Below are positions 6,401 to 63,762 of a DNA stretch of 64,000 nucleotides, one piece after another. The notes under the pieces are model-generated. The model was not told the origin of the DNA. It did not search any database and saw only the letters and a program-made list of their open reading frames with translations. Position 1 is the stretch's first letter, and each line of letters starts with the position of its first letter. Position numbers and translations under genes: made by a program. The stretch lies in NCBI GenBank assembly GCA_965202585.1, contig OZ241827.1, positions 23,250,001 through 23,314,000 on the forward strand. The letters are read 5' to 3'. The stretch is from Thalia democratica. Taxonomy: Eukaryota.

Positions 6401-9400
6401 TACTTAAAAGAAAACTAACCGAAAAAAAAAACATCTGTAGTTTTAGAAGAAATTCAAAAATCCTGGAAAAAGTATTCTAAAACCAGTGTCCACCTTGAGA
6501 TGTAGTGATCAAGTTAAATGGAATATGTAGTCTAAAATTATATAAGTAGTATACTAAATAAAAAAGGAAACAAAAACCTCATGATCTACTTTACAACTGT
6601 ATTGTTCAATTACGTAACAATGCTTTTAAACTTTTATTAAACATGCTAAAGGTTTGACCTCACATGAGCCTTGTCAGTAAGACTCCAGTAAAACATGTAC
6701 CATCGAATTCTTGCTTTTTGCAGTTGCACGTCGTTATAACTACTATATGAATGGTTTTTAGTAAAAGTTCTATTCAAAGTTGCTAGGAGCTTTTGCCAAC
6801 CAGTGTTGTTACTTTTTTGCATAAAGGAGTATTTTATTTATTCACTCTTCATCTTTTTGCTTTCGTTTTATAGGCTGAAGACCAGCTTGTGATCTTACAG
6901 TTGCTTTGAAAATTGTCTGCTAAGTTTAATAAATTAGAGTATATAGAAGAATATAGTATTTTGTGCTACTAAGTTTTTAAATAAGGAAAAATTGTTTATA
7001 TGCACAGTAACTATTATTGTCTTATAAAGTTTGTATATACTTAAAATGGGTAGCTGTCCAATTTGCACGAGCGTACGAAATTTCACGAGGGGACAAAGTT
7101 GCACGAGTGCACACAATTGCACGAAGACACATTTGCACGAGCAGACAATTTTGCACGGAGACATTTTACCACGGGTTAAATTTTTATTTTTTGATTTCTG
7201 TACAAATTTAAATTTAATTATTTCTTTTTTATTTTATTTTTTTACTATCACTGTTACCCCTAACCCTTACCCTCGGTCGGTATCTTTTTTTTTTCTCTTT
7301 TTTTTTATAATAGTTTTTGTTAGTTATTTTTCATTTTTACTATCACTTTAAGCCCTAACCCTTACCCTCAGTCAGTAACTTTTTTTTTCTTTTTAGTTCT
7401 TTTTAGATTTTTTTTCTGTTATTTTTTATTTTTTTAATATTTTTTACTTTCATCAGGGTTACCACTCTACCTGGAAACCTGGAAAAACCTGGAATTTGAC
7501 TATTCAGGAGAAAAAAACCTGGAAAAACCTGGAATTTTAACAATTTTCACATGTTATGATGTAAAATTTCGATTTGACTCGAAAAATCTATCATATAAAT
7601 AAAAAAATTTTGTCATCATCAAAATTTTTTTTATTAAAAAAAATGTTTAAATTAGCTTTACAGTATCTTATTTATATTTTTATACTTTATACTAGATAAA
7701 GTTATGCTGTATTTGAAAATAGTAAATTTTTTAAATATGTTTTATTAACTTTTCTACTAACATAGAAGTTCTGTAAAAAAAAGCCTTTTTATTTAAAACC
7801 TCTGAGATTTAAACTATATGCTCATTCAACTGAAAACTAGACATTCGATTAAAGTTTGCTAAAATCAAATTCATTATAATATGTACCAAATCATATAATC
7901 ATTAAACAGATGCTGCTGCTTGCAGAAGCCAATCCGAACCACCGAAATAAAAAAGAAGAAACCCCGCTGATGATGGCAAGTCGATCTGGTTGTCAGATTA
8001 CTGTCTCACTTTTGATAAAATTTGGCGCCAAAATTAACTGTTTCTCCCTAAACAAAGAAAGTGCTCTAACAATGGTTAGATTCCTATAAATATTTTCCAG
8101 AGTTTAATATTTAATTGGTTTTAGTTTGAGAAAATATTTATTACACATTTTAATTGATTTATAAGTAAGGCATTTCAAATTTTGGTTAGCATATAATTGT
8201 CAATGGATATGAAGAACAGGCATTATGCTCAGCTGAAAGTTAGCAGATTAATAAAAAATGACGAGTAGGAACATTCTCAGACACTAGTAGGAAACAACTC
8301 GTGCAACAATTTTAACACAACATAATACAACAACTTAACCTCAGGCGATACAAGAAAACCACTTGAAAGTAGTGAAGACGCTGTTGAGAAACGGAGCGGT
8401 GTGCATCGACGACGAGGTGAGGAAGACGGTCAACAGGATGAGACGTGCGGCCCGCAACCCGACTGAGACGCTGAGGTGGTTCGACAGCTACGTTTCAAAG
8501 TTGGTTTCATGCGTTGTGGTGTTTATATGGTGGACGAGTAGCTTTGTTTTGAAAAGAATGTGTTTGTTTTTGTGTTTTCCGACTAAAGTTTTTATCGCTG
8601 TAAAACAGTATTTTTTCCAAGCTCAAGTTTAATTATTTTTTACAGTTCAGGTGAAAAATTTACATCTTTTTTGTAATTTGAAAATATCAAACTGTTGTTT
8701 TAAGTACAACCAATTTTTATTGTATACCCGCATATTTTAGGGCTAGAATATCCATCAATGAACAAGTAGAAAAAGGAGCTAAAACACTTTTGATTATGCT
8801 AGTTGAAGAACAACCTCTTTTGCTGTGTAAAAGCCTTACAGTTTTTCAAAATAGTTTGTGGACCTTTGATTTCCATTACGACCATAGCAAGATACCTGGT
8901 TTGTTTTACAACATTTGATATTTTTTAACAAATTAAAGAAAATTTTAAACAATTAATTTTTATTTATTTTTGTTTAATTTCCAAAAAACCACAACTTTAT
9001 TTATATTTATAAGCATTATTAAACTGATGTATAAACAAAACAATATCGTAGCTATAGTTTACCTTTAAAACTTTTTTCACTACAGAAAACGCACACCCTG
9101 TGTTGTTTTGCACTCATACTAAACACGAGAGACATAATGATGAATTGAAAGCGAGTTTGCAAGAAAAAAGTTACGTGTTTTCAGTTTGTGTGGATGGTAA
9201 AACACAGACTCCATTTTACCCAACACCTACCATTAACAGGCAGAACAGAGTAAGATTTTTGTTAAATTGTTGCCACAACTAAAATCTCGATGGTAGTTAA
9301 TTGTGATTAAATTTGTTACTGACATTTAAATTAGTGGTGTAATGATAAGTATATTTTCGTATTGTTTTTAAAGTTTGTGACACCTAAGAAATTTTATTTA

Positions 9401-18585: not shown

Positions 18586-21500
18586 ACAGGGAAGATTTAG
18601 AAGATGTAGATGTTTGGATTAGGTTGAATGATCTGGACAAGTACAACTACTACCAATGGGTCGACGGATCTCCTGTATCTTATACTAAATGGTCTTTCAA
18701 CGAGCCAGATGGCGGAGTTAGTTGATATTTTTGTTTGATTTAAAAAAAAATCTATCTCAGTGATCAGCTAATGCCTTAAGAGCGTTTAACTGTTAAGCAT
18801 TTATACTAGAAACAAAACACTAGTCAACCATTCTTTATAACTGTGAACATAAACACAACAAATAATAAAATGAATATTTGTGTTTTAAATGATTATCTAG
18901 TTTTCTCAAATTTTTAGACTGTTTCTAATAAAATAAATAATAAAAAAATTTTAAGAGTTTATCTATCATAAAACTTTCATAAAAAAACTACTTATAATGC
19001 AATATATTATTTTTCTCAACCTAAACTTATTAAATGGTCAGGATCCGCAGTGCGTGAAATTTATCCGCTTGGAGGGGTACTGGTCGGACAAGAAGTGTAC
19101 CCAGCAGCTGCCCTACATGTGCAAGAAGTCCAAGCAGCTGATGGAGGACACGGGAACTGGTGACTTGCCCGTGGAAGAAGGCTGCGACCCCGGCTGGTCG
19201 GCCTATGGTCGGTTGTTGTTTTGTTTGGTCTTTCTGAACATATAGATAGTATTTTGTTTTAAACTTCCTAAAGATTTTTATTGCCTTAATTGTTATGCTA
19301 CAATCTTATTTTATATAGTTTTTGGTGTACTGAATTTTAAGAAAGTTTAATAACTTCCTATCCGCTATAATCTAGTATTTAGTCGTAAATGTTTATGGGA
19401 CATATCAAACAGAGTCTTCGTGCTACTACGTGAACACCGACGACACCATATACAGGTATGCGAGGGAGATTTGCGCTGAGAACAAAGACGGAGCGTACCT
19501 GGTCAGCATCAATGACGGTTACGAGCAAGCCTTCGTCAACTCGCTTGTTAGTTGAAGTTGTATTTGCGATTTGGTTTCTGCTTATAAGTATTGTTTAACC
19601 TTAAAATTTTAACTACTTTATCCGCTATAAAGAATTAAAGGCTTATATATTTATTGGAAAGCTGTCATACGCTTTTATTATATCGGCGTTTTATTAGTCA
19701 AAAATAAAGGTTACACAATTGTTTTGACAACATATTTTTTTTTACAAAGTATATCATTGAAATTTTCAAATAGACTATTAGCCAAGGTTTTTAATTTCAT
19801 GTAAACGAATAATAATGTAAGAAGTACGTAACAAAAGTTTTTTGTTTTATGTACTTGTTTGTAATTAAAAAACGTGTTGTGTCCAAAAGTTAAAAAAATT
19901 CAGGTGTCCGCAAAACTGCGTCCAGGTCTGAACTACACGGCGTGGATCGGGTTCGCCGGAAGAAATTTAGACGACAACATGGCTGAAATCGTTTATGAAT
20001 GGGAATCAAAGGAGCCGGTAACTTACACAAATTGGAATGTTGGACAGCCCCGTTAGATTTGTTCCATAGTTTGACGGTTGCACCAATTTTTATTATAAAA
20101 AAGTCTAAAACTTGTGGCTCAAAAGTAGAAGTCAAAAGTTAAACAGAATAAACCATTGCGAAAATTTTGGTTATACGTAAATATTTCTTACATTAAACAA
20201 AACATTTATTGTGCGTTTTCAAGAAAAGAAACACTAGGAAAAGAATTTACAGAAGTTTTAGATTTATTAAACATATTTTACTTTTAGCATAGTAATAAAC
20301 TCAAAAATTTCTTAACAATTAGAGTAAAAAAAAACGAACAACTTATTATTTTACTTCTTGAAAATTGCTTTTGTATAAAAAAGGTACGAGTTTGAAGAAT
20401 TTGAGGGCTAATGAATTAATGCTTTCAATATGAATAAAATAAATTTTCAAGCTATTTAAAATAAATTTTACCATACAAATGTTCAACAGAAACGAGGTAC
20501 GAGTGCGCGCTGCCGTTCACGTACAAGGGAGTGACGTACAACGAGTGCACGACCGACGTGCCGTCTCCGGCCAGGCAGAACGAGCCGTGGTGCAGCACCG
20601 ATGCGGAGTACAACGGTTTCTGGATGTACTGCAGCGACAAGCGGGCTGTTGCCTGCACCTACCTCGACCCCATCAACGGTTGGTTTGCTCGTTTGGAAAG
20701 CGTATTTTAAGTTTAATTACCACTTAAACTTGTAGAAATTTAATTGCATGTAAGTTTTAAAAAATTATTAAGATCATAAGTCATGATTTTTAATTATTTG
20801 ACTAAAGAAGTTTAAATGCAATTATTATTATTTTTTTTTACCGCATTAACAATTAATTTTTTTCAATAAGCAAAGATTAAATAAAATATGCATATTTTTT
20901 GACTTATGCTGGTGATTTTTATCAAAGTGTAAGCGCTATTAAATATTTATGTTAAAGAAAACAATAGTTAGGGTTTATAATGTGTTTGTCAAACCACGAA
21001 GCAATGATCTATTTTTTATTATTTTGTTTGGTACGGATACTTTAACTTATAAGATCGATACACTACTAACAGGTAAGTGGAACGTGGACTTTTGTGTGAA
21101 CGACTACCACTTTGTATGCGAGAAACCGAGGGTTGGATACCCGCAACCTTCCTACACCACCCCGGATCCCTCATTGAGTTGCCCGGATGGCTGGCTGAGC
21201 GATTCCACTTCATCCTACTGCTACATGGTGCGATAATGTTCTGAACAATATTTTTTGAATTTTTACTTGCTGTAGAGTTTGAGTAGCTGTTTGTTTAGAA
21301 ATTTCTGTTGCTTTTATTATTGCTTTTAAAGACAGCATCCGTTTGGTGAAGTCAATTTTGTTTATTTCTAATCAATATCATGAGACTTCTAAAAGTTTGA
21401 AAATTTAAATTTAATTATCAAATACTTGGAAATTTATACAAATCTTCAACTACGGCCATTCTGAAATACGTTTTGTATCGACACTAACTGCTCAAGAGTA

Positions 21501-23556
21501 TAAACATTCTATTTTATTTAAAACATCGAAAATAACTTTGTAATATTTCAACTATCAGGTGATGGAGTCTCTGGACGACGCTGACCGGAAGACGTGGCAG
21601 GAAAGCGTGGACTACTGTCGCCACTTGGGGGCGGACCTGGTGTCGGTGCACTCGCAGGAGGAGCAGGCGAGCGTGATACAGGCCGTGCAGCGGGTCACCG
21701 TCAACTCTTTCGTGTACTTCTGGATGGGGCTGAACAACCTGGTCCCCAAAGACGGATACCAGTGGTCCGACGGTCAGTTATTTTTGTGCATTTAAATGGA
21801 ATTCGGGATATTTTGAATATTTTTGAATATTTTATAAATAACCTGATAGAAAAAATACTTATTGGTTAGTATGTACATGGTCAGACTGTTGTTTTAAGGA
21901 TTTAAAAATAATTAGAGCGGTTTTAAAGATTACATAAGTTTTACGTAAGCAGATGCTTATATATACATATATATCATTAGGCTTCATAATCAACAGCCTG
22001 ACGCTGACTTTAAGTTGTTTGTGATAAATTTTTTAAATGAATATAACTTTATAAACTTATAGAGTTTAATAAAGGTTTTTATAAGAATTTATGAAAGATA
22101 TTTTAAAAAGTTTACTATACTTTTTATAGGTTATTACAAAATTTAACTTGTCACAACAATAACTCAAAAACAAATTTTAACTTATGATCATAGCTGCCAC
22201 AAACTAACAAGTTAATTTTTAAATTTTACGGATAAAAAAGTCAAAGATAATTACTTTTGTTTACTAATTTTCGTCATACAACATGTTTTTTGTGGTTTGT
22301 AATTCCAACTTAAAGTAAAAGTTATAGTTTTAGATTATTAAAAATTTAACTTTTTTTTTAGGATCTCCAACATATTACTATAGTTGGGGAGACGGGGAGC
22401 CCAATAACTTTGAAGGAACTGAAAACTGCATTGAAGGACAATTTTACGCAGGCGTTGAAAGGTAAGCTGATTTATAGCAGTTAACTTTTGTTTGTAAAAG
22501 TTACATAAAACTAACTCACATAAAATGAAAATACTGCTTGATAAAAGGATCTTATAAATATTTATTTTTAAATACGAAATACTTTAATGGAAACAATGTG
22601 GATGAACTAATGTTTGTTAAGTTATTCTGTAGGTAGCCAAAAAAAATTCGGTAAAAAAAAGACGTTCATTTTCGACGAACATCTTTGAAAAAATATAGAG
22701 AGAAAATATTTAAAAAAAAGAGCAAAAAAGCCATCCGAATTCGCCCAAACTTTAATAAACAATTTTAAATTATTACAAACATCTACAGTTTATATCATTC
22801 AATGTGATCTTAACAGTTGGAACGACATTGAATGTCAAAGCAAACGAAACTGGATTTGCAAAATAGCAAAGGGCAAGTCACCGTTAGCACCGCCCACGGA
22901 ACCATATAAAAGGGGCGTAACCCCGCGTGCGGCACCGACCAGTCATGGGTAAGTACAACTTCAAACTAACATTTAAAGAAATCAGAGCAAACAAATTTTC
23001 AATTTGAGCACGTATGCTTTTGACCAGTTTTTAAATATGACTAGAAGACTTAATTATTCAAAAATTATCTGAAAATTTTATTAACGAGTTTTTTTTATTA
23101 TAAATTTATTTCTCATAAAAATTGTTTCAAAAAAAAAAAGATAGAGAACAAACAAGAAAAAAACGCGATTTAAACCCACACGTCACACGCAGGTCAGGTA
23201 CCAAACGTCGTACAACCAGGACAAGTGCTACCTGTTTAACGACCAGTCCTCCCGCCAGCTGGTGGCAGTGCACAGCGACGACGAAAGCTTGACGCTGCAG
23301 TCCTGGACCGCAATAAGTTCCGCGTCCAGCTTCTGGATAGGACTGCCAGTATAAAAAAGTTAATACAAACTAAACGAGTCACATACAGAGGGATGGACGT
23401 GGAGCGACAGTTCTCCTTACCAGTACTCGAACTGGGCGAACGGGGAGCCGAACGGCCAGGACGGGGAGGAGTGCGTGGAGATGTACCCGTGGGACGGCAG
23501 CTGGAACGACGTGCCCTGCTACGAAACCAGGGGGTTCGTCTGCAAGAGGCCTAAAG
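18586..23556 (+). CDS. Mannose-receptor-like multi-C-type-lectin gene fragment with nested FN2 domain; 3' part disrupted (possible pseudogene)
   Basis: Exons 18586-18716, 19042-19207, 19413-19546, 19904-20051, 20490-20678, 21073-21227, 21559-21772, 22362-22461, 22817-22948, 23193-23556. Splice phases agree through 22817. Four CTLDs: WIRLND/EPD, WIGF/GQP, WMGLN/EPN/WND, WIGL/EPN/WND. FN2 motif CALPFTYKGVTYNECTT...PWCST...WMYC. Frameshift near 22921 and two in-frame TAA at 23352 and 23361. Confidence 0.85.
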
Positions 23557-23669
23557 GTTTGAAAAAATATATAGATTTTTAAGGTTTGTAGGATTTAAGC
23601 TTTGTGGTTGAGAACTTTATTTTTTGTGATAGAATTAACAAGTTTATAATATATTAGTATGATCTATAC

Positions 23670-23745
23670 TAGGGGTGGGCAACGTAAATAATTGACGGGC
23701 CGGATCCAAAAAAAAAAGTCCTCAGCGGGCCGGAGCATTTCGAAT
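23670..23745. mobile_element. Left end of a hAT (Charlie/Buster-like) MITE, interrupted by a TAGTGATCTACCGGA-family remnant at 23746-23890
   Basis: TAGGGGTGGGCAAC terminus followed by CGGGCCGG motifs. Related ends at 30699, 52894 and 61167. Confidence 0.55.
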
Positions 23746-25013
23746 TAGTGATCTACCGGATTCAGCTGGATTTATTTTTAGATCTGGATCCTAATTTTAC
23801 AATATTATTCTGATCTGGCAAAAAACTAATTTTAGACAAAGATCCGGATCCGAACGTATGCTTATTTGAAAAAGATTTGGATCCGGCCGGGTGCTAATTT
23901 ATCGTGTATTTCAGAATTTTGAATCGATATATTAATTACCAAGGTTCTCAAGTATGAAATTTTGTTTTAATTTTTATTAAGTATACATAACTATATATTT
24001 ATTATAACTCTGGATCGAATTAATACTAATTAGTCTTATAAAAACAATAATTTACTTACTAAAAAATACTCGAGCCTAATATTTCAAGCTAAAACATTAA
24101 AAAATTGTTAATTGTTCGAAAATATATATATTATTCAGAAGTTAACTAACATTACAAAATTAAACTACTACCTTTTAATTTAAACAAACTTATTAAGATT
24201 CATTACACATTTTTGCACGTATAAAAGAAACAAAACAACAAATAATTCTGATATAATAAACAGCTTTACCGTAAAAAGCAAAAAAATAAATTAAAAGATT
24301 TTGATGAAACACTTAAGGTTAATCATATATCACAGTTGTTTAAATCTAGTTGCATGAAGGTTTGGGAAAATCTGCAATTGCACTGAAATACCGATTAGGT
24401 TTGAGATTAGCTTATCCTTGTTAAAGTTAATGGTCGGAAATGTTTGTTTTCAAATGTATGAAGTTTCGAACAAAACAACTAGGTTCATGGTCATATTTTG
24501 AATTTGACAAACTTTGGCTCGTTCAATAATACATAAAATCTATCTAAAAGTCTACTAAAAGCAGCGATATTGTATGCTTGATTTAAATTTTCATATCAAA
24601 ATATTTAAAAAACAGTTAAACCTAGATAAAAAATTACTTTGACTTAAAATTCTAGTACTTTTACTTTCAAAATATCAAACATTAATGATCAACTTATGAA
24701 ACTTAACTAAGTTCTGTACTCTAAAAATAACATTATCAAACAATTCATCTAAAATACTTTTATAAAAGTACTAACATAAAATAACGAAATACTAAAATAA
24801 AAAGAGATTAATTAATACTAAACATGATAACTATAACAATTTAATAGACTTTTAGACTAAGATCAGTTTTTCTATAATGAAATTAGTACTAAACGAAAAA
24901 CTAACATATAAAACTGTCATATTATATATATAATGTAAAGTTTAAAGAGTTTAGGAGGAATAATTACACTAAAAAGAAGTCAATGAGACATTTGTGGATC
25001 ATCAAAGTTTTTA

Positions 25014-28000
25014 ACAAGTTAGGAAAAAGCTAATAAAATTTAGAATATTCACCCTTTTTAGTTGGAAGTTGTCTGGTTTTGCTATAATTGTAAATTTTCC
25101 GTACTTCGTAAAATTATCTTCTACTTCAGGACAAAATGTGATCAGACAGGATTCGGAGGTACAATTATCAGAAAGCTTCTTATACTCAACCTAATAAAAA
25201 AAGAATAGTTAAATTGATTAAATAACTTTAAAACCTACTTGATATTAATAAACCAGTTAGGATTTTACTAAATAGTTATAATATAACAGTTAAAAGTTAG
25301 GAAAAAACTAATAAAATTTAGAGTATTTACCTTGTCTAGTTGGAAGTTGTCTGGTTTTGCTATCATTGTAAATTTTCCGTATTTCATAAAATTTTCTTCT
25401 ACTTCAGGAAAAAATGTGATCAGACAGGATTCGGAGGTAGAATTATCAGAAAGCTTCTTATACTCAACCTAATAAAAAAGAATAGTTAAATTGATTAATT
25501 AATTTTAAAACTACTTCATATTAATAACCCAGTTAGGATTTTACTAATTAGTTATAATATAACAGTTAGAATTAGGAAAAAACTAATAAATTTAGAGTAT
25601 TTACCTTGTCTAGTTGGAAGTTGTCTGGTTTTGCTATCATTGTAAATTTTCCGCATTTCATAAAATTTTCTTCTACTTTAGGACAAAATGTGATCAGACA
25701 AGATTCGGAGGTACAATTATCAGAAAGCTTCTTATATTCAACCTAATAAAAAAGAATAGTTAAATTGATTAATTAATTTTAAAACTACTTCATATTAATA
25801 ACCCAGTTAGGATTTTACTAATTAGTTATAATATAACAGTTAGAATTAGGAAAAAACTAATAAATTTAGAGTATTTACCTTGTCTAGTTGGAAGTTGTCT
25901 GGTTTTGCTATAATTGTAAATTTTCCGTACTTCGTAAAATTATCTTCTACTTCAGGACAAAATGTGATCAGACAGGATTCGGAGGTACAATTATCAGAAA
26001 GCTTCTTATACTCAACCTAATAAAAAAAGAATAGTTAAATTGATTAAATAACTTTAAAACCTACTTGATATTAATAAACCAGTTAGGATTTTACTAAATA
26101 GTTATAATATAACAGTTAAAAGTTAGGAAAAAACTAATAAAATTTAGAGTATTTACCTTGTCTAGTTGGAAGTTGTCTGGTTTTGCTATCATTGTAAATT
26201 TTCCGTATTTCATAAAATTTTCTTCTACTTCAGGAAAAAATGTGATCAGACAGGATTCGGAGGTAGAATTATCAGAAAGCTTCTTATACTCAACCTAATA
26301 AAAAAGAATAGTTAAATTGATTAATTAATTTTAAAACTACTTCATATTAATAACCCAGTTAGGATTTTACTAATTAGTTATAATATAACAGTTAGAATTA
26401 GGAAAAAACTAATAAATTTAGAGTATTTACCTTGTCTAGTTGGAAGTTGTCTGGTTTTGCTATCATTGTAAATTTTCCGTATTTCATAAAATTTTCTTCT
26501 ACTTCAGGAAAAAATGTGATCAGACAGGATTCGGAGGTAGAATTATCAGAAAGCTTCTTATACTCAACCTAATAAAAAAGAATAGTTAAATTGATTAATT
26601 AATTTTAAAACTACTTCATATTAATAACCCAGTTAGGATTTTACTAATTAGTTATAATATAACAGTTAGAATTAGGAAAAAACTAATAAATTTAGAGTAT
26701 TTACCTTGTCTAGTTGGAAGTTGTCTGGTTTTGCTATAATTGTAAATTTTCCGTACTTCGTAAAATTATCTTCTACTTCAGGACAAAATGTGATCAGACA
26801 GGATTCGGAGGTACAATTATCAGAAAGCTTCTTATACTCAACCTAATAAAAAAAGAATAGTTAAATTGATTAAATAACTTTAAAACCTACTTGATATTAA
26901 TAAACCAGTTAGGATTTTACTAAATAGTTATAATATAACAGTTAAAAGTTAGGAAAAAACTAATAAAATTTAGAGTATTTACCTTGTCTAGTTGGAAGTT
27001 GTCTGGTTTTGCTATCATTGTAAATTTTCCGTATTTCATAAAATTTTCTTCTACTTCAGGAAAAAATGTGATCAGACAGGATTCGGAGGTAGAATTATCA
27101 GAAAGCTTCTTATACTCAACCTAATAAAAAAGAATAGTTAAATTGATTAATTAATTTTAAAACTACTTCATATTAATAACCCAGTTAGGATTTTACTAAT
27201 TAGTTATAATATAACAGTTAGAATTAGGAAAAAACTAATAAATTTAGAGTATTTACCTTGTCTAGTTGGAAGTTGTCTGGTTTTGCTATCATTGTAAATT
27301 TTCCGCATTTCATAAAATTTTCTTCTACTTTAGGACAAAATGTGATCAGACAAGATTCGGAGGTACAATTATCAGAAAGCTTCTTATATTCAACCTAATA
27401 AAAAAAAGAATAGTTAAATTGATTAAATAACTTTAAAATCTACTAGATATTAATAACCCAGTTAGGATTTTACTAAATAGTTATAATATAACAGTTAAAA
27501 ATTAGGAAAAAACTAATAAATTTAGAGTATTTACCTTGTCTAGTTGGAAGTTGTCTGGTTTTGCTATCATTGTAAATTTTCCGCATTTCATAAAATTTTC
27601 TTCTACTTTAGGAAAAAATGTGTTCAGACAGGATTCGAAGGTACAGTTATCAGAAAGCTTCTTATACTCAACCTAATAAAAAAAGAATAGTTAAATTGAT
27701 TAAATAACTTTAAAATCTACTTGATATTAATAAACTAGTTAGGATTTTACTAAATAGCTGTAATAACAGTTAAAAATTAAGAAAAACTAATAAATTTAGA
27801 GTATTTACCTTGTCTAGTTGGAAGTTGTCTGGTTTTGCTATCATTGTAAATTTTCCGTACTTCGTAAAATTTTCTTCTACTTTAGGACAAAATGTGATCA
27901 AACAGGATTCGGAGGTACAATTATCAGAAAGCTTCTTATACTCAACCTAATAAAAAAAGAATAGTTAAATTGATTAAATAACTTTAAAACCTACTTGATA

Positions 28001-29345
28001 TTAATAAACCAGTTAGGATTTTACTAAATAGTTATAATATAACAGCTAAAAGTTAGGAAAAAACTAATAAAATTTAGAGTATTTACCTTGTCTAGTTGGA
28101 AGTTGTCTGGTTTTGCTATCATTGTAAATTTTCCGTATTTCATAAAATTTTCTTCTACTTCAGGAAAAGATGTGATCAGACAGGATTCGGAGGTACAATT
28201 ATCAGAAAGCTTCTTATACTCAACCTAATAAAAAAGAATAGTTAAATTGATTAAATAACTTTAAAATCTACTTGATATTAATAAACCAGTTAGGTTTTAC
28301 TAAATAGTTATAATATAACAATTAAAAGTTAGGAAAAAGCAAATAAAATTTAGAATATTCACCTTGTCTAGTTGAAAGCTGTCTGGTTTTGCTATTATTG
28401 TGAATTTTCCGTATTTCGTAAAATTATTTTCTACTTTAGGAAAAAATGTGATCAGACAGGATTCGGAGGTACAATTATCAGAAAGCTTCTTATACTCAAC
28501 CTAATAAAAAAGAATCGTTAAATTGATTAAATAACTTTAAAATCTTTATGATATTAACAAACCAGTTAGGATTTTACTAAATAGTTATAATATAACAGTA
28601 AAAAGTTAGGAAAAAACTAATAAATTTAGAGTATTTACCTTGTCTAGTTGGAAGTTGTCTGGTTTTGCTATCATTGTAAATTTTCCGCATTTCATAAAAT
28701 TTTCTTCTACTTTAGGAAAAAATGTGATCAGACAGGATTCGGAGGTACAGTTATCAGAAAGCTTCTTATACTCAACCTAATAAAAAAGAATAGTTAAATT
28801 GATTAAATAACTTTAAAATCTACTTGATATTAATAAACCAGTTAGGTTTTACTAAATAGTTATAATATAACAATTAAAAGTTAGGAAAAAGCAAATAAAA
28901 TTTAGAATATTCACCTTGTCTAGTTGAAAGCTGTCTGGTTTTGCTATTATTGTGAATTTTCCGTTTTTCACAAAATTATCTTCTACTTTAGGAAAAAATG
29001 TGAACAGACAAGATTCGAAGGTACATTTATCAGAAAGCTTCTTATATTCAATCAATAAAAAAAAGAATAGTTAAATTGATTAAATAACTTTAAAATCCAC
29101 ATGATATTAATAAACCAGTTAGGACTTTACTAAATAGCTGTAATAGCAGTTAAAAATTAAAAAAAAAACTAATAAAATTCAGTGTATTTACCTTGTCTAA
29201 TTGGAAGTTGTCTGGTTTTGCTATCATTGTAAATTTTCCGTATTTCGTAAAATTATCTTCTACTTTAGGAAAAAATGTGATCAAAAAGGATTCGGATGTA
29301 CATTTTTCAGAAACCTTCTCAGACTTAACCTAATTAAAAATAACA
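25014..29345. repeat. Tandem array of 16 units of 274-278 bp (exon plus intron) with higher-order structure
   Basis: The anchor AGTTG(G/A)AAG occurs at 25060, 25338, 25612, 25886, 26164, 26438, 26712, 26990, 27264, 27542, 27816, 28094, 28370, 28646, 28922 and 29199 (variant AATTGGAAG). Variant order is A-B-C, A-B-B, A-B-C with an 826-bp period. Confidence 0.95.
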
Positions 29346-29525
29346 ATTAAGTTAAAATAAAAAATCTTTAAAGTCATTATAGTTTTTCTATTGATCTTAC
29401 TACAACCTAAATCAATTTATTATGCAGATCACTATATTTCAAGTATGACAAATAAAGTGAAGAAAACTCACTTGTTTTTGACCCAAATTTATCAGGATAA
29501 GCAACACCCATAAGCATTTTTTCAT
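25053..29525 (-). CDS. Putative secreted repeat glycoprotein: signal-peptide exon plus 16 tandem 46-codon exons; 3' end unresolved
   Basis: Exon 1 29525-29472 encodes MKKCLWVLLILINLGQKQ and ends at a GTGAGT donor in phase 0. Then 138-nt phase-0 exons at 29329-29192, 29052-28915 (acceptor AG lost), 28776-28639, 28500-28363, 28224-28087, 27946-27809, 27672-27535, 27394-27257, 27120-26983, 26842-26705, 26568-26431, 26294-26157, 26016-25879, 25742-25605, 25468-25331, 25190-25053. All are stop-free. In 14 copies the acceptor is a T-rich tract ending ATTAG (TTTTTAATTAG at 29329); donors are GTAAAT or GTGAAT. Consensus VEYKKLSDNCTSESCLITFFPEVEENFMKYGKFTMIAKPDNFQLDK. Confidence 0.78.
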
Positions 29526-32500
29526 GTTTATCAAATTTTATTAGAACACAAATACTATAAATACAAATATTGTTTAACAAAACTAATTTATCAAGTTCTT
29601 AAATCTAAGTTTTAAAAGCTTACTAAAGGCTTGCTTAATTTAAACTTTTAATATTCTAAATTGACTGAAAATAATCAATGAAGAATTGAAAATAATTATA
29701 AATTGAGTAACTTATCAAGATAATTAGTCACTAACATTTTTTCAAACAGTTAAGCATGTTTTTATAACTAAGTTATTAATAATCAATATAGTACCAATCA
29801 ATCATTATGTTGTCAAATTATATAATTATGATTATCAATAAACTTAAATAATTAATTAGTTCAAATACGAGACGAAATAAAAATTGTACGTAGAAAAAAT
29901 ACAAAGTATACTATTAATTGTTTAAATCCTTTAAAGTTTCGACTAGTACAAGGTTCTACAGCCTTGTAAAAGACGCAGGTCATTTTTCTTAGTAAAAAGC
30001 TGTTTGCAGGCGGTTTTTAATAAAAAAGGTTTTACGTAGGCCGAATTCTTTTTTTTTTTCGTTTGTTGTAATCAAAATAAAAATACTACTTTAGAAAAAC
30101 AGTGTTATAAAATAAGGTTTACGAAATAATTAAAGTTTAAAAAGTTTTACGACAGTTTAAAGTTTAATTACGCGGTTCGAGTTCTCAAAAAGATGTTTAA
30201 AGGGCCACAACTCAAAAAGTAATATATATTTAAAAAAAACTGCGTATGTACGTTTACTTAATAAATATATTACAGTTAAATATTAAGAAATAAATATTAA
30301 AAGAAAAACTTAATAATCACTAAAAAATCCTATATTTAAAACTTTTTTTAGCCATATCTCAAAAAGTGTTTAAAATTTTGCAAACAAAATTTAATATCAA
30401 TTAGACCTATGTAAGGATTTTTTTACTTTTTTTTAATACATATAACCTATTGAGTTGTTACCCTTTCAATAATTTATTAAGAATTGGAAATGTCGGAATT
30501 TAAATTGTCCGAATTTGAATAGTCGTGCACCCTAAAACACAAGTAATTAGTAACTAGATATTTTACCTAATTGTAAGTTTGAAAAAAGCTTTTTACTGTG
30601 CTCAAAAAGGTAATTTATTTACTAAAAAGTACCTCGCTAACCGCCGATCTATGCTTTGCGAGCCGATTTTTACCAAGGTCTGCATGTTGCCAACCCCTGT
30701 ACGACTAGCTCTTTTATATAAAAGTTTTAACATAATTAGCAGTTTTTGTTTTATCTACCAAATTTAAAGCTTACACTTTTAACAATCTTGTATTTACTAC
30801 TCGGTATTTATAAATATTTAAGTTAGTTTATTTATAGAAAACATAACTCGTTGTAATTGAATTTCAAAAAACGTATTTTTATTATTTATTTTGTGGTACT
30901 TAAATTTATTTTTTTATAACGTAAACATTTTAATTTCAGTATACTTAAACTCAACTAAAAAACGAAACTTGGTTTATAAGATTTTTACATAAAATTTTTC
31001 CTAATATATAACCTCGGCCATTTTAAATTGTTGTAATCAATTAATAAAGATTAAAATAGTTTAACTTTAAGTTTAAGGATTCTTTTTTATCATTTTAAAC
31101 TATCAAATATTTTACAAATTTTGAATTTTATACATTTACTTTAGACTTAAGCGTTTAACTTTAAATGTATACACAATGTAAAATGACACAAAAGTTAGGT
31201 TGAACTTTTAGTATATAAATTGTTTGTTGAATGAAAAAGCTCAAATATTTGGTCCTAGGACCTGGTGTACGAAAAAACCTTTCGGTTATCGAGACATACA
31301 CCAGGGTACAATTTAAAGTCATGTCCAGGACAAAATTTTTATATTATTTGTATATTATATTAAAAATTATACTAAATTTTTTATTAGTTCAAAAATTGGC
31401 AACAGTACTGAACACAGTACTAACTACTAACATTACTATAAAATTAAATCAATTTGTTTATTCAGTTTTTTTGATAGAAATTGTACCAGAAAGAGATATT
31501 AAACCTAAAGCCCAGTCTGATTTGCATAACTACTTAGTCAGCAAATTTAATCAGACCTTTATATTTTTTTATTCATAGCCTTATTCCCAAACACCTTACC
31601 AAAACATATTAAAAATTTATCAAAAAAAAAAAAACTAAAAATAAAACAAAAAAATGTTTTTTGCTGAATCATCAAATAAGAGTAACTATTGTTGTCACGA
31701 CTGAGCTTTAAGTTTGAAAGCATCAGAAAGTAACTCACACAAATGAAATACTATTCGGTAAAAAGCAACTCTTTAGTAACAAATAGAAACAGATTAGAAA
31801 CATTTTAAGATTTTATACAATCTGAGCCGGACCAATGGCATTAGAACTTAATTGATATGCTCAATAATGAATGACTGTTTAGGGTATAAACAAGTATTAA
31901 TGTACTCATGATAATGTACGTCCTGAGCAAGACGTTAAAAGGTATCCGTGGTGTGCGACTCGATTACCGAAAGGTTTTTTTGTGCACCAGGTCTTAAGAC
32001 TATATACTTTGGGCATACTTTTGTCGTTCATAAGACATATTGAAGTAATATTTCTATCAAAATTACGAAAAAAAGTTAACTGTAATAAGTTTTGCATTTG
32101 CTTCTAAATTCCTTTAGAGAAAACTAGAACTAAGTATCATAACAAAATAGAACAAACAAAAAAAAAAAAAACGCTTAAATGAACAGCTAGAATTAGTTTT
32201 GGCAACTATGGTTTCCCTCGTTTATTTAAATTTTATTTTTATATTTAAAGTTTTTATTATAATATCCTTCAGTTGAACAAAGGAAAGGACCTCCCAAAGT
32301 GGCCCAGGTGTTTTACTTTATGGTTCTTTAATCCACAGTTTACTAGTATAATAAGCTAGTTATTTAAGACTATATGTTTTATATACTATTAATTTTTGTT
32401 AGAATATGTTTCTTTTAGAATATTTGTTTAGATGGTCAGAACTCAGAAGCTTTGTTTTTATTTTTAAAGTACAATAAATACAATCTAAAACTACAGTACA

Positions 32501-34929: not shown

Positions 34930-35593
34930 GGGTAGCTGTCTAAATTGGACGAAGGGACAAAATTGCACAAAATTGCACGAGGATACTTTTTCACGAAGAT
35001 AACTTTGCACGAAGGGTCACTTTTGCGTGAAGACAATTTTGCACGAGCAGACGATTTTGCACGGAGACAGACAATTTTGCGTGGGTTGTTTTTTTATTTT
35101 ATTTTAATTTTTTTTTTTTTTTACTATTACTCTTACATTTACCCCTCCTAACCTTTACCCATTGTAGGTAAGTTTATTTAGTTTTAATTAGTTTTATATT
35201 TTAATTTATAATTATCTTTTATTTTTTGATTTTTTTTTGACTATCATTGTTACCCCTAGCCCTTACCCTCGGTCGGTAGCTTTTTGAATTTTTTTTGTTT
35301 AATTTTTTTTTTATTGTAATTTTTATTAATTATGTTTTTATTTTTATTCTTATTATCACTATTACCCATGAACCTTACGCTCGGTCAATAATTTTTTTTA
35401 AATATATAAAATTAATAATATTATTATTCTTTTTCTTAATTTTATTATTTTTTCTTTATTTTTTTACTCACATTCAAAAATGTAACTCGTGCGAAATTGA
35501 CTCTTTGTGCAAAATCGTCTTCGTGCAATTTTGTTCTCGTGCAACTTAGTCCCCTCGTGCATTTTTGTCTTCGTGCAATTTAGACCCGTTCCT
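34930..35593. mobile_element. MULE-like non-autonomous element (GGGTAGCTGTC/TTGCAC family)
   Basis: Termini GGGTAGCTGTC and GACCCGTTCCT with inverted TTGCAC arrays. Flanks CATAAAAAT / CGTAAAATT are a 7/9 match. Confidence 0.7.
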
Positions 35594-36865: not shown

Positions 36866-38140
36866 ATGTTTAAATTGTTTAAAGTTAAATTACTAACTCT
36901 TCTCATAGCATGTGCTTTTTTGACGTCAAGTGGCCGTAGCTACGACGACACTTTTGTTTCCCGCGAACAAGAAAACAACTCTGATTACTTCATCACCGAA
37001 AAAAGCTTCAAGCAAAGCAAAGTTTTAGGAAACTGCTGCCTCGTAGCCGGCATGGCCACGTTGCCGGGCAACGCTGAGCTGCGCCACCAAGTGTTGTCGC
37101 CAAACTTCACAAAGCCACAAGAACGGGAATTCTTCCAATTCAACATTTACCGGATGGGAAAGCTCCATCGAGCGGAAGTCGACGTTAAAAGTTTGCCGAC
37201 GGCGGAAGACGGAAGCGAGCTGGTTTACTCGAGCAGCGCATACGGCGACTTGGTCGGACCCTCGCTCGAGAAAGCCCTGGTCGACGTGCACTTCGGGGGC
37301 GAGTACGATTCGTCCGAGGAGGCCCACCCCTCCACCGTCCTGACCAGCTTCACAAACGGCTACTACGAAGAGTTTCCAATCGTCTCGATTTTAGGCTTAA
37401 AAATAAGGGACGTGGTCCAACACGGGTTAAAAAGCAGCTCTCCGATGTTGGTCCAGTTTGCAAACAGGCCGGGGTTGTATGAATGGCATTGTTACACTTT
37501 GCTTGACATTAAAAACGACACTGCACAGCTGTACAACCCGCACGGCAGCTACCTTCAAATGACTGAAAGCGACTTCTACGAAAACTTGGAATCACTCGAC
37601 ATTGCTTATTACAAAAACAAAATATTCAGAATGCCGCAGCTTGAAGCTTCTTTTGAGTTCAACGAAACTTGGCCTGCGCTGCGACAGCACGAGAAAATTC
37701 GATTTGTGGAATACGACCTGGTGGTTGACGAAAACGACACGCAGTTGCTGTTTAACTTACTCGCCAAGCGTGATTCTCGTCCGGGCGTTTCTCCGAAGCT
37801 TTTCATCTTTGCCGTCGACAATGAAAACGGTGAAAAAAGCCTCCGAATGGTGCGAAATTCGGTGGTGCGTGGCTACAGAAAATCCAACGAAGAGATTTAC
37901 AGTTACACCGACTCTTTGAGAGCGACACTGAATAGCGGCAAGTACAAGGTGGCGGTCGTGCTGTCGACGTGCTGCACGTTTCGCAACAGCGCCTCTTGCG
38001 AGGAGTACTTGCGAAACGGAGGAGGCGAGTTTTTGTTCCGCCTCGCCGCTTCGAAGCGCTGTTCGGTCAGCAAGACTCAGGATAAAGACACCGAAATGGT
38101 CGAAAAAGTGCTCACCGACTATGAAGTGGGAAAATATTGA
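36866..38140 (+). CDS. Calpain-family (peptidase C2) cysteine protease with N-terminal signal peptide, single coding exon
   Basis: 424-aa ORF. QSKVLGNC57 resembles calpain QGxLGDCW; also SLEKALV..FGGEYD, WH208CYTL and LYN224PHG, giving the Cys-His-Asn triad. The C-terminal ~170 aa is beta-rich like calpain domain III. Hydrophobic N-terminus KLLTLLIACAFLTSSG. AATAAA near 38256. Confidence 0.85.
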   Translation: MFKLFKVKLLTLLIACAFLTSSGRSYDDTFVSREQENNSDYFITEKSFKQSKVLGNCCLVAGMATLPGNAELRHQVLSPNFTKPQEREFFQFNIYRMGKLHRAEVDVKSLPTAEDGSELVYSSSAYGDLVGPSLEKALVDVHFGGEYDSSEEAHPSTVLTSFTNGYYEEFPIVSILGLKIRDVVQHGLKSSSPMLVQFANRPGLYEWHCYTLLDIKNDTAQLYNPHGSYLQMTESDFYENLESLDIAYYKNKIFRMPQLEASFEFNETWPALRQHEKIRFVEYDLVVDENDTQLLFNLLAKRDSRPGVSPKLFIFAVDNENGEKSLRMVRNSVVRGYRKSNEEIYSYTDSLRATLNSGKYKVAVVLSTCCTFRNSASCEEYLRNGGGEFLFRLAASKRCSVSKTQDKDTEMVEKVLTDYEVGKY

Positions 38141-41839: not shown

Positions 41840-43420
41840 ATGAACATATTTCAAAGCAAATCAAGCCAAATCTCGCTCAGCCAGCTCAAGTACGAGGGGG
41901 TGATCCTAGGTGAGGGGTCGTTCGGGGTGGTGAGGCTGGCCAAGCACCGGGTGACCAGGAGGAAGTACGCGGTGAAGGTGCTTAAGCACGATCACGCGAC
42001 CAGCCAGGAAGAAAGGGAGGCGATCGACAACGAGACCGGCATACTCGAGCAGATGGACCACAGGTTCGTGGTCAGGACGTGGCACGTAAAAAGGCAGCCT
42101 AAAGCCACCTACCTGGTCATGGACTACTGCTCCAAAGGTTCATTATTGGACTACATCAACGGCATCACGGAGCCGTTGACGGTGCACCAGTTCAGGAGGT
42201 ACACGGCGCAGATGGTGTCCGGCCTGATGTACGTCCACGACCGCGACATCTGCCACCGCGACATCAAGCTGGAGAACTACGTTCTGGACGCCAGGCGCGA
42301 CGTGAAGCTCATCGACTTCGGCCTCTCGAAAGTGACCAAGCTGCGGCAGAAGGAAAGGGTGGGCACGCCGGCGTACGCGGCTCCGCAGGTGTGCGAGCAC
42401 GACTACGACCCGTTCAAGGCGGACGTGTGGGCGCTGGGCGTGGTCATGTTCTGCATGGCGCACGGTGATCGGCCCTACGACTCGGACGACTTCGACGAGA
42501 TCCTGCGGATGCACAAGGATCCGATGAAGAAGCCGCTGGTGGCCGTAGGCCACTACGACGTGGACCGGATCCTGTTCAACACGCTCAGGGTAGACGAGGA
42601 CGCGAGGTGGGGTCTGGACGAGTTGTCCGAGGTCGAGTGGCTGCATCCCATACCCTGCCTCTCGCCGTCCAGAAAGAACAGGATAGAAATGAGCAGGATG
42701 AGGAGGAAGAAGAGGGTGATGGCGGAGCAGAGGAAGCCGGTGCTCAGGAGCAAAAGTCAGCACAAAGTTGGGAAAATAAAGGTAAGCGAAAATGTGCCTT
42801 ACATGGAGATAACCAAGCAGAAAGAAAAAACTAAGAGAGGAGTCATTGAAAAGCTTAAAGGTGAAGAGTTGTGCAGTAGTAACTGTGTAGTAAAACAAAA
42901 TAAAAAAGAAAAGAGAAGAGAAAAAGAACAAAAGTTTTATAAAGAATACAAAAAAGAACCGAAAAACTCTAGACATAATAAAATGTTTAGGACTAATGAC
43001 AGGGGGCAATCTGCGTATGCATTGGACCAAAATAACCGTGTAATGACAAAGCCGCGCAGAAACAAGTTAAAAACTACAAAACAGCTCGACAACTTTTTCG
43101 AAATTTCCGAAAACAAAAGGGAATTCTTTGTGGTCATCGAAGCTTCGAAACAGGACATCCACGAAAAGTGCTTGCAGGCGCTGAGGGCAAACTTCGTCGA
43201 TTGGAAACGGGTGCGCGACTGCTACAGGTGCAGCAAGAAACTTAGCATGTGTCACGTGACCTTCCTGATGAGCGTGCGCGTTGACTTCGCCACCAGCGAC
43301 AAAGTCACGGTGAAGTTCGTGAAGAAGGACGGTTCCGACGAACACTTCTCCGTTGTTTCCAAAAAGATCTGCAAAGAGTTTTTCGGCGCTGCCAGAAGGC
43401 CGCAGAGCTGCGTTCTTTGA
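41840..43420 (+). CDS. Intronless CAMK-group Ser/Thr kinase, MARK/AMPK-related, with C-terminal KA1-like domain
   Basis: 526-aa ORF with GEGSFG, YAVK46, E65 in helix C, HRDIKLEN, DFG, GTPAYAAPQ and DVWALG. Lys-rich linker. The C-terminus VKFVKKDGSDEHFSVVSKKICKEF resembles the end of MARK KA1 domains as I recall them. Confidence 0.9.
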   Translation: MNIFQSKSSQISLSQLKYEGVILGEGSFGVVRLAKHRVTRRKYAVKVLKHDHATSQEEREAIDNETGILEQMDHRFVVRTWHVKRQPKATYLVMDYCSKGSLLDYINGITEPLTVHQFRRYTAQMVSGLMYVHDRDICHRDIKLENYVLDARRDVKLIDFGLSKVTKLRQKERVGTPAYAAPQVCEHDYDPFKADVWALGVVMFCMAHGDRPYDSDDFDEILRMHKDPMKKPLVAVGHYDVDRILFNTLRVDEDARWGLDELSEVEWLHPIPCLSPSRKNRIEMSRMRRKKRVMAEQRKPVLRSKSQHKVGKIKVSENVPYMEITKQKEKTKRGVIEKLKGEELCSSNCVVKQNKKEKRREKEQKFYKEYKKEPKNSRHNKMFRTNDRGQSAYALDQNNRVMTKPRRNKLKTTKQLDNFFEISENKREFFVVIEASKQDIHEKCLQALRANFVDWKRVRDCYRCSKKLSMCHVTFLMSVRVDFATSDKVTVKFVKKDGSDEHFSVVSKKICKEFFGAARRPQSCVL

Positions 43421-44190: not shown

Positions 44191-46644
44191 GGGTGGGTGT
44201 CACTTTTGCACGAAGGGTCACTTTAGCACGAGGGGACACTTTTGCACGGCGTCACTTTTGCATGGAGGGTCACTTTTGCAGTAGGGAAAACTTTTGCACG
44301 GCGACTCTTTGCACGGAGGGTCACTTTTGCACGAGGGGATACTTTTGCGAGGCGTCACTTTTGGACGAGGAGACACTTTTGCTTGGTTGTCATTTTTGCA
44401 CGCAGGGTAATTTTTGCATGGCGTAATTTTTTCACGAAGAGACACTTTTGCACGGCGAAATTTTTTCACGATGACAATTCTTACGGCAGCATTGATGCAC
44501 AATGTCACATTTTTACGATGAAAATTTTCTTACAGCGACATTTTGGCACGATGACTTTTTTGCACGGTACATTAATTTCACTTTTTGGTAAAAAGTATTT
44601 TAGCTAGTACCAAATCTGTAACATAAAAAGAAACTGAAAACTAAAATTTTATAACATACTTATATTAAAGGCAAATAATGAAAGATTTAAAATCTTAAAC
44701 AGTAAAAGTTAATGTTTGAAACAAACTAACGAAAAGATAATTTAAAATTATTTACAAAAGATACATACCAGGAACAAAAAATTTATTTTATCCAGAAACT
44801 AGGATAAAAAAATACTTTAAGTGTAGGTAAATTGTTCTAGTTTATTTTGAACTTTAATATATTAATCAACAGCTATGTCTTTTTATATACTTTACTATAC
44901 GGTTACAAGTTTATTGCCATTTTATGGACCTAGGCATCAAAACCTTGACCACTTAAACTGAAAGACACATAAAGAAAAAAATAAGAATAAACACAAATGG
45001 TTTATTTATTAAAACAAAGATAAATAATTTGATATAAAGTTTATAGGTTAACATAAAAAACAAAATATCAGTCACAAACTTATGCTCATTTACGCTTTGA
45101 CGTAGAACGATCAACATCAAAGATTTAACTGCATTGACTTACAACAAAAATAAAACCTAACGCTGCAAAGACATTAAAAAAAGACTGGTCAGATGAATAA
45201 TCATTAAATACATTGAAAAGGACTCATTTTTAAAAGAGTAAAGATGCTGCTAATAAAATTGAACTATAAACTAAGCTAAATCTTAAAATTAAGTCAACAG
45301 TTGATAAAAATTATTTATTAATTTTACTAACACAAATATAATTTAGATAAAACTTTCTTAACTTTAAACGAAGTTCTTTAACATTTTTGCAAGAAATTAA
45401 TTAATTTGGTAGTTTGATCCATTTTTCAACTGACCGATAATAAAAAAGAATTCTGCCAAGCCTCATTTTGAAATATTGCAGCGGTTGAAAACTAATATTG
45501 TATATTTTTTTGAACATAAATTTAAACTTCCAAATGTTACTCTCTCATTGGCTTATCATGATCATGCAACATTATAGAAATTAAATGTTTCAGGTTTAAA
45601 ACATGAGAAATGCGCTATTTTATTGCTCTTTTTATTCTCAAGCTGAGTTAAAAAATAAAAATAAACATCAAGTAAAATTTGAAATACCTTTACACTTCAT
45701 AAATTAACTAAATCTTTTATTTGTTTATTTATTTAACAATAGTTTAAAATTAAAATAAATTTAAAATGTTCTTTTAACAACCATATAATGCTAATTATAA
45801 TATCAAGAGAATATAAATAAAAAATAATACTCAAGATTCGTGTTTTAAAGCCTTACTAAATTAAGTTTATCTTTCTGTTTAAAAATCAACGAGATTGATA
45901 TTATTTTTATTAAATTATTCAAAATTGTTTTTATTTAATATTAGAAAATGTATATTCATCTAGTTTAATTTAAGTTAAGATTATAAATATGAATTAATGA
46001 ATTGTGGTACGTTATTATATTGTTCTACGTAAAACTTCGAATAAAAACTTTTATTTAAGAACTTTGTTTTAGCACTTACGAGGTCTTTGACCGAAACTTA
46101 GTTTGTAAAATCAATTCTTGAAAGAATAAATTTATAAAAATTTTACATTAAAATTTTATTTAAAAATTACCACTTTTTATTCATTCAAAACAACTTTCGT
46201 TTAAAAGCGAATATTATTTGAGTTGACCAAAAAAATAATTTAAATTTCTATATGAGAAAATAAAAAATAGAAGCGTGCTAAAGTTAAGTTCCGTTTAAAA
46301 TTGACTGATTGTTTAAAATTTTTGCAGTTCATAAGTATATCCAGAAAATATAATGCCGTGCGAAAGTGACGCTATGCAAAAATTATGCCATGCAAATGTA
46401 ACGTCGTGCAAAAGTTTTGACTTGTAAAAATATCGCCGTGCAAAAATGACCTTGCGTGGAAAAGTGTCTCCTTGTGCAAAAGTGACGCCGTACAAAAGTG
46501 TCCCTCCGTGCAAAAGAGTCGCCGTGCAAAAGTGACACTGTGGAAAAGTGTTCCCTCATGCAAAAGTGACGCTCGTGCAAAAGAGTCGCCGTGCAAAAGT
46601 GTCTTCGTGCAAAAGTGACGCTCGTGCAAAAGTGACCCGTTCTA
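44191..46644. mobile_element. MULE-like element with long subterminal TCACTTTTGCACG arrays and about 1.8 kb of internal sequence
   Basis: Perfect 9-bp TSD ATATTATAT (44182-44190, 46645-46653). Inverted repeat arrays at 44191-44570 and 46350-46644. Confidence 0.85.
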
Positions 46645-63166: not shown

Positions 63167-63762
63167 GGGAACAGCTCTAAATTGCACAAAGTTACTAAAT
63201 TGCACGAGGGTACTAAATTGGCACGAATGCACAAAATTGCACCAAGCCACATTTGCACAAGAGCACAAAGTTGCACAAGTGAACAAAATTGTACAAAGAC
63301 AATTTTGCACGATTTACATTTTTGCACGAGAGTAAAAAAATACAGAAAAAAAACTGAAAAAAAAGTTATAAAAAATGTTTTATAAAAAAAAGAAGAAAAA
63401 AAAAGTTACTGACCGAGAGTAAGGGTTTGGGTGATAGTAGAAAAAAAAAAACTAATAAAAATTATTAAAAAAAAAAGCTACCAACCGGGGTAAGGGTTAT
63501 GGGTAACAGTGATAGTAGAAAAAAAAACAAAATTAAACAAAAAATAAAAATTAATATAGAAATTAAAAAATAAATAAATAAATTTAACCTGTGCAAAAAT
63601 ATCTAAGTGCAAAATTGTCTGCTCGTGCAAAAGTATCTTCGTGCAATTTTATCTTTGTGAAATTTTAAGCCCTTCTGCAAATTAGTCTTCGTGCAAAAGT
63701 ATCTTAGTGCAATTTTGTGCAATCTGCAATTTTATACGCTTGTGCAAATTTGACAGCTACCC
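63167..63762. mobile_element. MULE-like non-autonomous element (GGGTAGCTGTC/TTGCAC family), reverse orientation
   Basis: Perfect 9-bp TSD ACTTATCTA (63158-63166, 63763-63771). Ends GGGAACAGCTC and GACAGCTACCC. Confidence 0.85.

Follow-up and report, generated by a model that had tools for sequence, protein, structure and literature searches.

Sixteen tandem exon-like units behind a signal-peptide-like exon: a possible young secreted-glycoprotein gene in Thalia democratica

Results

Organization of the array and of its 5' side

We analysed a 64,000-nt stretch of the Thalia democratica genome (assembly GCA_965202585.1, contig OZ241827.1, positions 23,250,001 to 23,314,000 of the forward strand; hereinafter, the window), which contains a single tandem array at 25011-29340 (Tandem Repeats Finder: period 274, 15.7 copies, 93% matches). 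On the minus strand, from 29329 to 25053, this array comprises 16 segments of exactly 138 nt (46 codons) each, all open in one common frame. On their upstream side the segments have TTTAAC, then a T-tract and TTAG, with the acceptor intact in 15 of the 16 copies; on the downstream side there is a donor (GTAAAT in 13 copies, GTGAAT in three) whose GT is kept in every copy. The introns between them (n = 15) are 136-140 nt long, and the repeat unit is 274-278 bp. All 16 candidate exons are symmetric (phase 0/0), and an N-C/S-T sequon is present in 14 of them (copies 3-16), the same number as had been given by an earlier reading of the locus from its letters only (hereinafter, the sequence-only reading).

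The unit proposed by that reading, that is, a 138-nt stop-free exon with AG/GT borders and an intron of 136-140 nt, recurs in 16 copies, with the exception of the AG acceptor of copy 2, which has been lost by a single deletion (Table 1). The next AGs of this copy are situated 12 and 15 nt downstream, both in frame, and the exon would start at 29040 or 29037; hence copy 2 may be used from one of the alternative acceptors or may be skipped.

An ATG exon had been claimed 142 nt before copy 1, with a GTGAGT donor and in phase 0, and both its coordinates and its phase are as claimed (Table 1). Judging by composition, this candidate first exon encodes the n- and h-regions of a putative signal peptide. 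The combination of an ATG, a signal-like peptide and an in-phase GTRAGT occurs at one site only on both strands of the window (128 kb), directly before the array. Upstream of the ATG there is a TATA-like motif, which, if used, would leave a 5' untranslated region of a few bases only, unless a leader is trans-spliced.

Table 1. Features of the array, its flanks and the rest of the window (positions in the window)
Feature	Position	Strand	Description
Candidate first coding exon	29472-29525	-	ATG, 18 codons, MKKCLWVLLILINLGQKQ; ends in phase 0 at donor GTGAGT (29471-29466)
Candidate intron 1	29330-29471	-	142 nt; GTGAGT...TTTAAC...T-rich...TTAG
Array of exon candidates	25053-29329	-	16 phase-0/phase-0 138-nt candidates, 15 introns; consensus module VEYKKLSDNCTSESCLITFFPKVEENFMKYGKFTMIAKPDNFQLDK
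Starts of copies 1-8	29329, 29052, 28776, 28500, 28224, 27946, 27672, 27394	-	
Starts of copies 9-16	27120, 26842, 26568, 26294, 26016, 25742, 25468, 25190	-	
Destroyed acceptor of copy 2	29053-29056	-	1-nt deletion, ATTAG to ATTG
Higher-order repeat	25053-27394	-	three 3-unit blocks of 826 bp (copies 8-10, 11-13, 14-16), 99.3-99.6% identical
Possible read-through tail of copy 16	25011-25052	-	GTGAAT donor unused; 13 more codons, VNILNFISFFLTC, TAA at 25013-25011
High-copy interspersed repeat	24300-25020	.	adjoins the array; own end of the element at ~25020
TATA-like motif	29555-29563	-	TATTTATAG, 30-38 nt upstream of the signal-exon ATG
Multi-exon gene with lectin pieces	18997-23582	+	convergent with the array
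Calpain-like open reading frame	36866-38140	+	intronless, 424 aa
Protein-kinase open reading frame	41840-43420	+	intronless, 526 aa
41-bp tandem repeats	4168-4349, 5716-5861		CCGG/GGATCC-rich, GC-rich islands in AT-rich DNA
Sequence similar to the 41-bp repeats	23700-23950		GGATCCGG-rich, between the lectin gene and the array
Arrays of 16-18-bp repeats	7060-7163; 34973-35080 with 35517-35587; 44199-44471 with 46355-46640; 63177-63291 with 63591-63712		core TTTTGCACG

The 3' end of the array

After copy 16, homology to the repeat unit stops at 25011-25016, where the array meets the end of a high-copy interspersed element. In the DNA runs, the word depth of this element is 13,000-37,000, compared with ~55-66 in single-copy sequence, and there is an accumulation of loose ends at 25014/25020. 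If the donor of copy 16 is not used, the frame would run on through a short tail to a TAA (Table 1), and no other stop could be named as a candidate end of the gene; no AATAAA was found near it. The element itself (24900-25020) is represented in a marine metatranscriptome (X4) by three contigs that are 88-99% alike; thus, copies of the element are transcribed somewhere.

Local amplification and differences between genomes

Copies 8-16 form three consecutive three-unit blocks, which are the youngest part of the array (identical positions between blocks: 820/826, 687/690 and 681/690), whereas the divergence of copies 1 and 2 from all others is 10-15%. The near-identity of the 826-bp blocks implies recent and ongoing unequal exchange. 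In three DNA runs, the contigs on the array have a depth 1.5-4 times that of single-copy DNA. Neither a continuation of the array nor a single-copy paralogue, the latter being among the checks suggested by the sequence-only reading, was found elsewhere in the window. Thus, the array results from local amplification at one locus. A dispersed satellite was rejected by the same depth, to be compared with 13,000-37,000 for the flanking element.

Sequencing data sets X1-X3 behave as whole-genome DNA, with collinear 583-bp contigs crossing the upstream sequence, the signal exon, the intron and copy 1. As a hint of constraint, the 14 differences listed across 29254-29836 for another haplotype (X2) and another organism (X3) are confined to the intron and the upstream sequence, leaving the 128 exonic bases free of them; the three listed for X3 at 29350, 29351 and 29393 all fall within candidate intron 1. 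Between the two organisms, neither the signal exon nor copy 1 has a listed difference, whereas the flanking DNA differs by ~3.8%.

Protection of the reading frame

Among the copies, we observed about 10 distinct indel events in the 15 introns and none in the 16 exon segments, compared with 31 distinct substitutions in introns and 36 in exons (Fisher p = 0.001; p = 0.014 without the events in long T-runs). Nucleotide runs of four or more are about equally common in exons (4.9) and introns (5.4). Stops are absent from the 36 distinct exon variants, with 1.65 expected. Thus, as the exons have acquired neither indels nor stops, the reading frame is protected. The proposed frame is the best-scoring one of six by codon-usage log-odds (trained on the clear coding regions of the window); two plus-strand frames are open as well, but they lack AG/GT borders and have lower scores, and hence a plus-strand reading was rejected. 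The window has no match in Rfam.

Discussion

Gene, relic or chance

There are several possible explanations of these data. Very probably, the unit is a real exon with its intron, amplified behind a real signal-peptide exon, and hence genic in origin. The exon-intron architecture put forward by the sequence-only reading is supported by the unique in-phase signal-like exon, by donors in 16/16 and acceptors in 15/16 copies, and by the exclusion of indels from exons. We consider it somewhat more likely than not that the locus is still a gene, encoding a secreted repetitive glycoprotein, as favoured by frame protection and intact splice sites. A considerable number of observations weigh against this, and we give them here together with the alternatives on which they bear.

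Improbably, the array could be a non-coding minisatellite that resembles an exon and an intron by chance, as AT-rich DNA readily yields T-tract-AG, GT and open frames. Indeed, in the AT-rich background of the window, open stretches of at least 46 codons occur at ~3.5 per kb, or about one per 276-bp unit, and the same 138 nt are open in three of the six frames; hence the open frame as such carries no weight, and of the claim of stop-free exons the count stands (all 16 are stop-free), but openness alone is within chance. The codon-usage log-odds of the module are ~0 bits, which places it 19th of 100 in a comparison with open stretches that arise by chance. The GC content is 33% in exons and 18% in introns, but a contrast of 0.15 is equalled in 8% of adjacent background windows (p ~0.08). 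Relatives of the module were not found either: with three copies as queries and E up to 10, Pfam yielded no family, a profile built from 11 copies had no match among 1.84 billion representative proteins, JGI metagenome contigs contained no relative, the best ESM Atlas score of 0.64 left the module unrecognised, and a literature search for its peptide strings gave no match. The sequence-only reading had not recognised the 46-aa module, and this impression was borne out in these four collections; the blanks exclude sampled relatives only, because the protein collections do not hold the annotation of this genome. AlphaFold, given one module and an 11-copy alignment, was uninformative (pLDDT 52). 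What goes beyond chance is the combination of the exon-like segments with the signal-like exon and with the absence of indels. The ATG exon with its GTGAGT lies upstream on the same strand and in phase, and is unique in 128 kb; an acceptor and a donor occur together with a length divisible by three; and indels avoid exactly the putative exon.

Less probably than a living gene, but more probably than a chance resemblance, the locus is a dead relic, that is, a former small secreted-protein gene without its 3' part (lost perhaps on arrival of the high-copy element at ~25020), of which the second exon and intron have propagated as a local minisatellite encoding no protein. The substitutions look neutral, as would be expected in this case: the inter-copy divergence is 0.060 in exons and 0.055 in introns, the three codon positions are little different (0.044/0.063/0.072), and 9 synonymous and 27 non-synonymous variants were observed, compared with the neutral expectation of 6.8 and 27.6 (dN/dS ~0.74, not significant). 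One acceptor, that of copy 2, is already destroyed, and cysteine positions are unstable (C10S and Y30C in four copies each, F20C in six and C15F in a single one), with odd totals that would not be tolerable for a disulphide-stabilised module. Neither a terminal exon nor a poly(A) signal was identified, with the high-copy element situated at the 3' junction, and the absence of homologues in the collections searched fits a relic as well. X1-X3, which are collinear with the genome, contain no GT..AG joints; four joints with sides of 21-23 nt were spurious. The RNA depth at 25061-29700 is zero in X4 and X5, where the contigs of X4 match the flanking high-copy repeat only, but this is a very weak negative, as these two marine metatranscriptomes, reached via the neighbouring calpain/kinase stretch, hold 6-8% of the words of that stretch. 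On the other hand, a relic does not readily account for zero indels in the exon segments as opposed to about 10 intron events, for zero stops among the variants, or for the signal exon and copy 1 without listed differences between organisms in more divergent flanks, although X3 contig 21 has, close to its end, a further mismatch outside the list that is probably exonic and weakens the between-organism contrast to p ~0.07.

Finally, we consider it very improbable that the locus serves as an expressed diversifier. In this reading, the 16 exons, symmetric and slightly different from each other, would be skipped in a regulated manner to produce combinatorial secreted isoforms for immunity or allorecognition, and copy-number change by unequal crossing-over would provide individuals with different isoform sets. 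The gene would then be similar to the micro-exon genes (MEGs) or to an allorecognition system, with an orphan 46-aa module in a lineage of marine animals for which the databases contain no annotated relatives. With 16 exons in phase 0/0, any subset would keep the frame; differences between the copies affect ~20 residues, cysteines and sequon positions among them; and a signal exon followed by symmetric exons is used in this way by schistosome MEGs (PMC5825161). However, there are no transcripts in the X1-X5 data, the 16 copies encode 11 distinct peptides, with four copies identical, the variants are in neutral proportions without any non-synonymous excess, and the variation follows the duplication of the higher-order repeat rather than position-specific diversification.

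A possible scenario

Returning to the reading that the locus is still a gene, we suggest that it is a young, lineage-restricted one, or at least one that was alive until very recently. The first exon would encode a signal peptide and would be followed by a 276-bp cassette comprising a phase-0 symmetric 46-codon exon and an intron of ~138 nt. This cassette would have been amplified in place to 16 copies by unequal crossing-over, the latest events involving the 826-bp three-unit blocks. If currently expressed and spliced according to the AG/GT borders, the transcript would encode a secreted protein of ~754 aa with 14 N-X-T sequons as potential glycosylation sites and with an odd, variable number of cysteines. 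Such a product may be a length-variable structural or coat-type glycoprotein, its size being set by the copy number, as in genes with coding variable-number tandem repeats (VNTRs).

If expressed, the locus would be an orphan secreted-protein gene caught very early in its growth by amplification of an exon-intron cassette, at a stage when the reading frame is already protected and the amino-acid sequence is still unconstrained. Such genes would be missed by annotation based on open reading frames or homology, and would be removed by repeat masking. If not expressed, the locus would be a local minisatellite of the ordinary kind, with a dead exon as its starting point.

Comparison with known systems

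The nearest known mechanism is a coding VNTR of exon-intron units, for example KIV-2 of LPA (PMC11462820, PMC7613587). In both cases, the tandem unit holds complete exon(s) and intron, here with GT in 16/16 and AG in 15/16 copies; the copies are near-identical and preserve the frame (here, 138 nt per copy with no stop or indel), so that the protein length tracks, or here would track, the copy number; unequal exchange keeps the array homogeneous; and the product is, or here presumably is, secreted. At the same time, the KIV-2 unit is 5.6 kb long and has two exons, as opposed to 276 bp and one exon, and the kringle is an old domain, whereas the present module is an orphan without a recognisable fold.

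As for the use of symmetric exons behind a signal exon, the closest known case is that of the schistosome MEGs, whose internal exons are 6-36 bp long (PMC5825161). The features in common are a first exon for a signal peptide (here, by composition) with a run of symmetric exons after it, an AT-rich genome, lineage-restricted secreted products (here, putative ones), and a frame that is kept on exon skipping. However, the short MEG exons are not tandem copies, whereas here the copies are near-identical and 138 bp long, exceeding the exon size in the MEG definition, and there is no sequence similarity between MEGs and the module.

The NBPF genes with their Olduvai repeats are higher-order exon-repeat genes with triplets, the units being exon doublets on the kilobase scale and the proteins being expressed and non-secreted. 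They are similar to the present array in that exon-bearing units form a very recently amplified three-unit higher-order repeat, and different in having exon doublets, kilobase-scale units, non-secreted proteins and known expression. With an ordinary non-coding minisatellite, the array shares its head-to-tail arrangement, the period of 274-278 bp, the higher-order structure and near-neutral substitutions; it differs in that its symmetric open segments are bounded by splice sites, have no indels, and are situated directly behind an in-phase signal-peptide-like exon.

Neighbouring genes and repeats

Three other protein-coding regions of the window were considered (Table 1). The multi-exon gene convergent with the array contains several C-type lectin pieces and one fibronectin type II piece, as identified by Pfam on exon open reading frames; these domains point to a marine animal, and one that lacks closely related annotated species. 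The calpain-like open reading frame (Peptidase_C2, 1.1e-10) has relatives among ENA proteins only, at most 75% identical and forming a small family of seven. The protein-kinase open reading frame (Pfam Pkinase, 1.4e-55) has 44% GC in a region of 28% GC; it is closest to marine metagenome sequences (94% identity for a protein on a Tara Oceans METAG scaffold, with the next two at 85% and 57%), its best named relatives, from green algae and protists, being 38-40% identical, and it may be a retrogene or a foreign gene.

The GC-rich 41-bp repeats, including the similar sequence at 23700-23950, are probably parts of another repeat family. The arrays with the TTTTGCACG core form opposite-orientation pairs at distances of 0.4-1.9 kb and resemble the subterminal repeats of non-autonomous DNA transposons.

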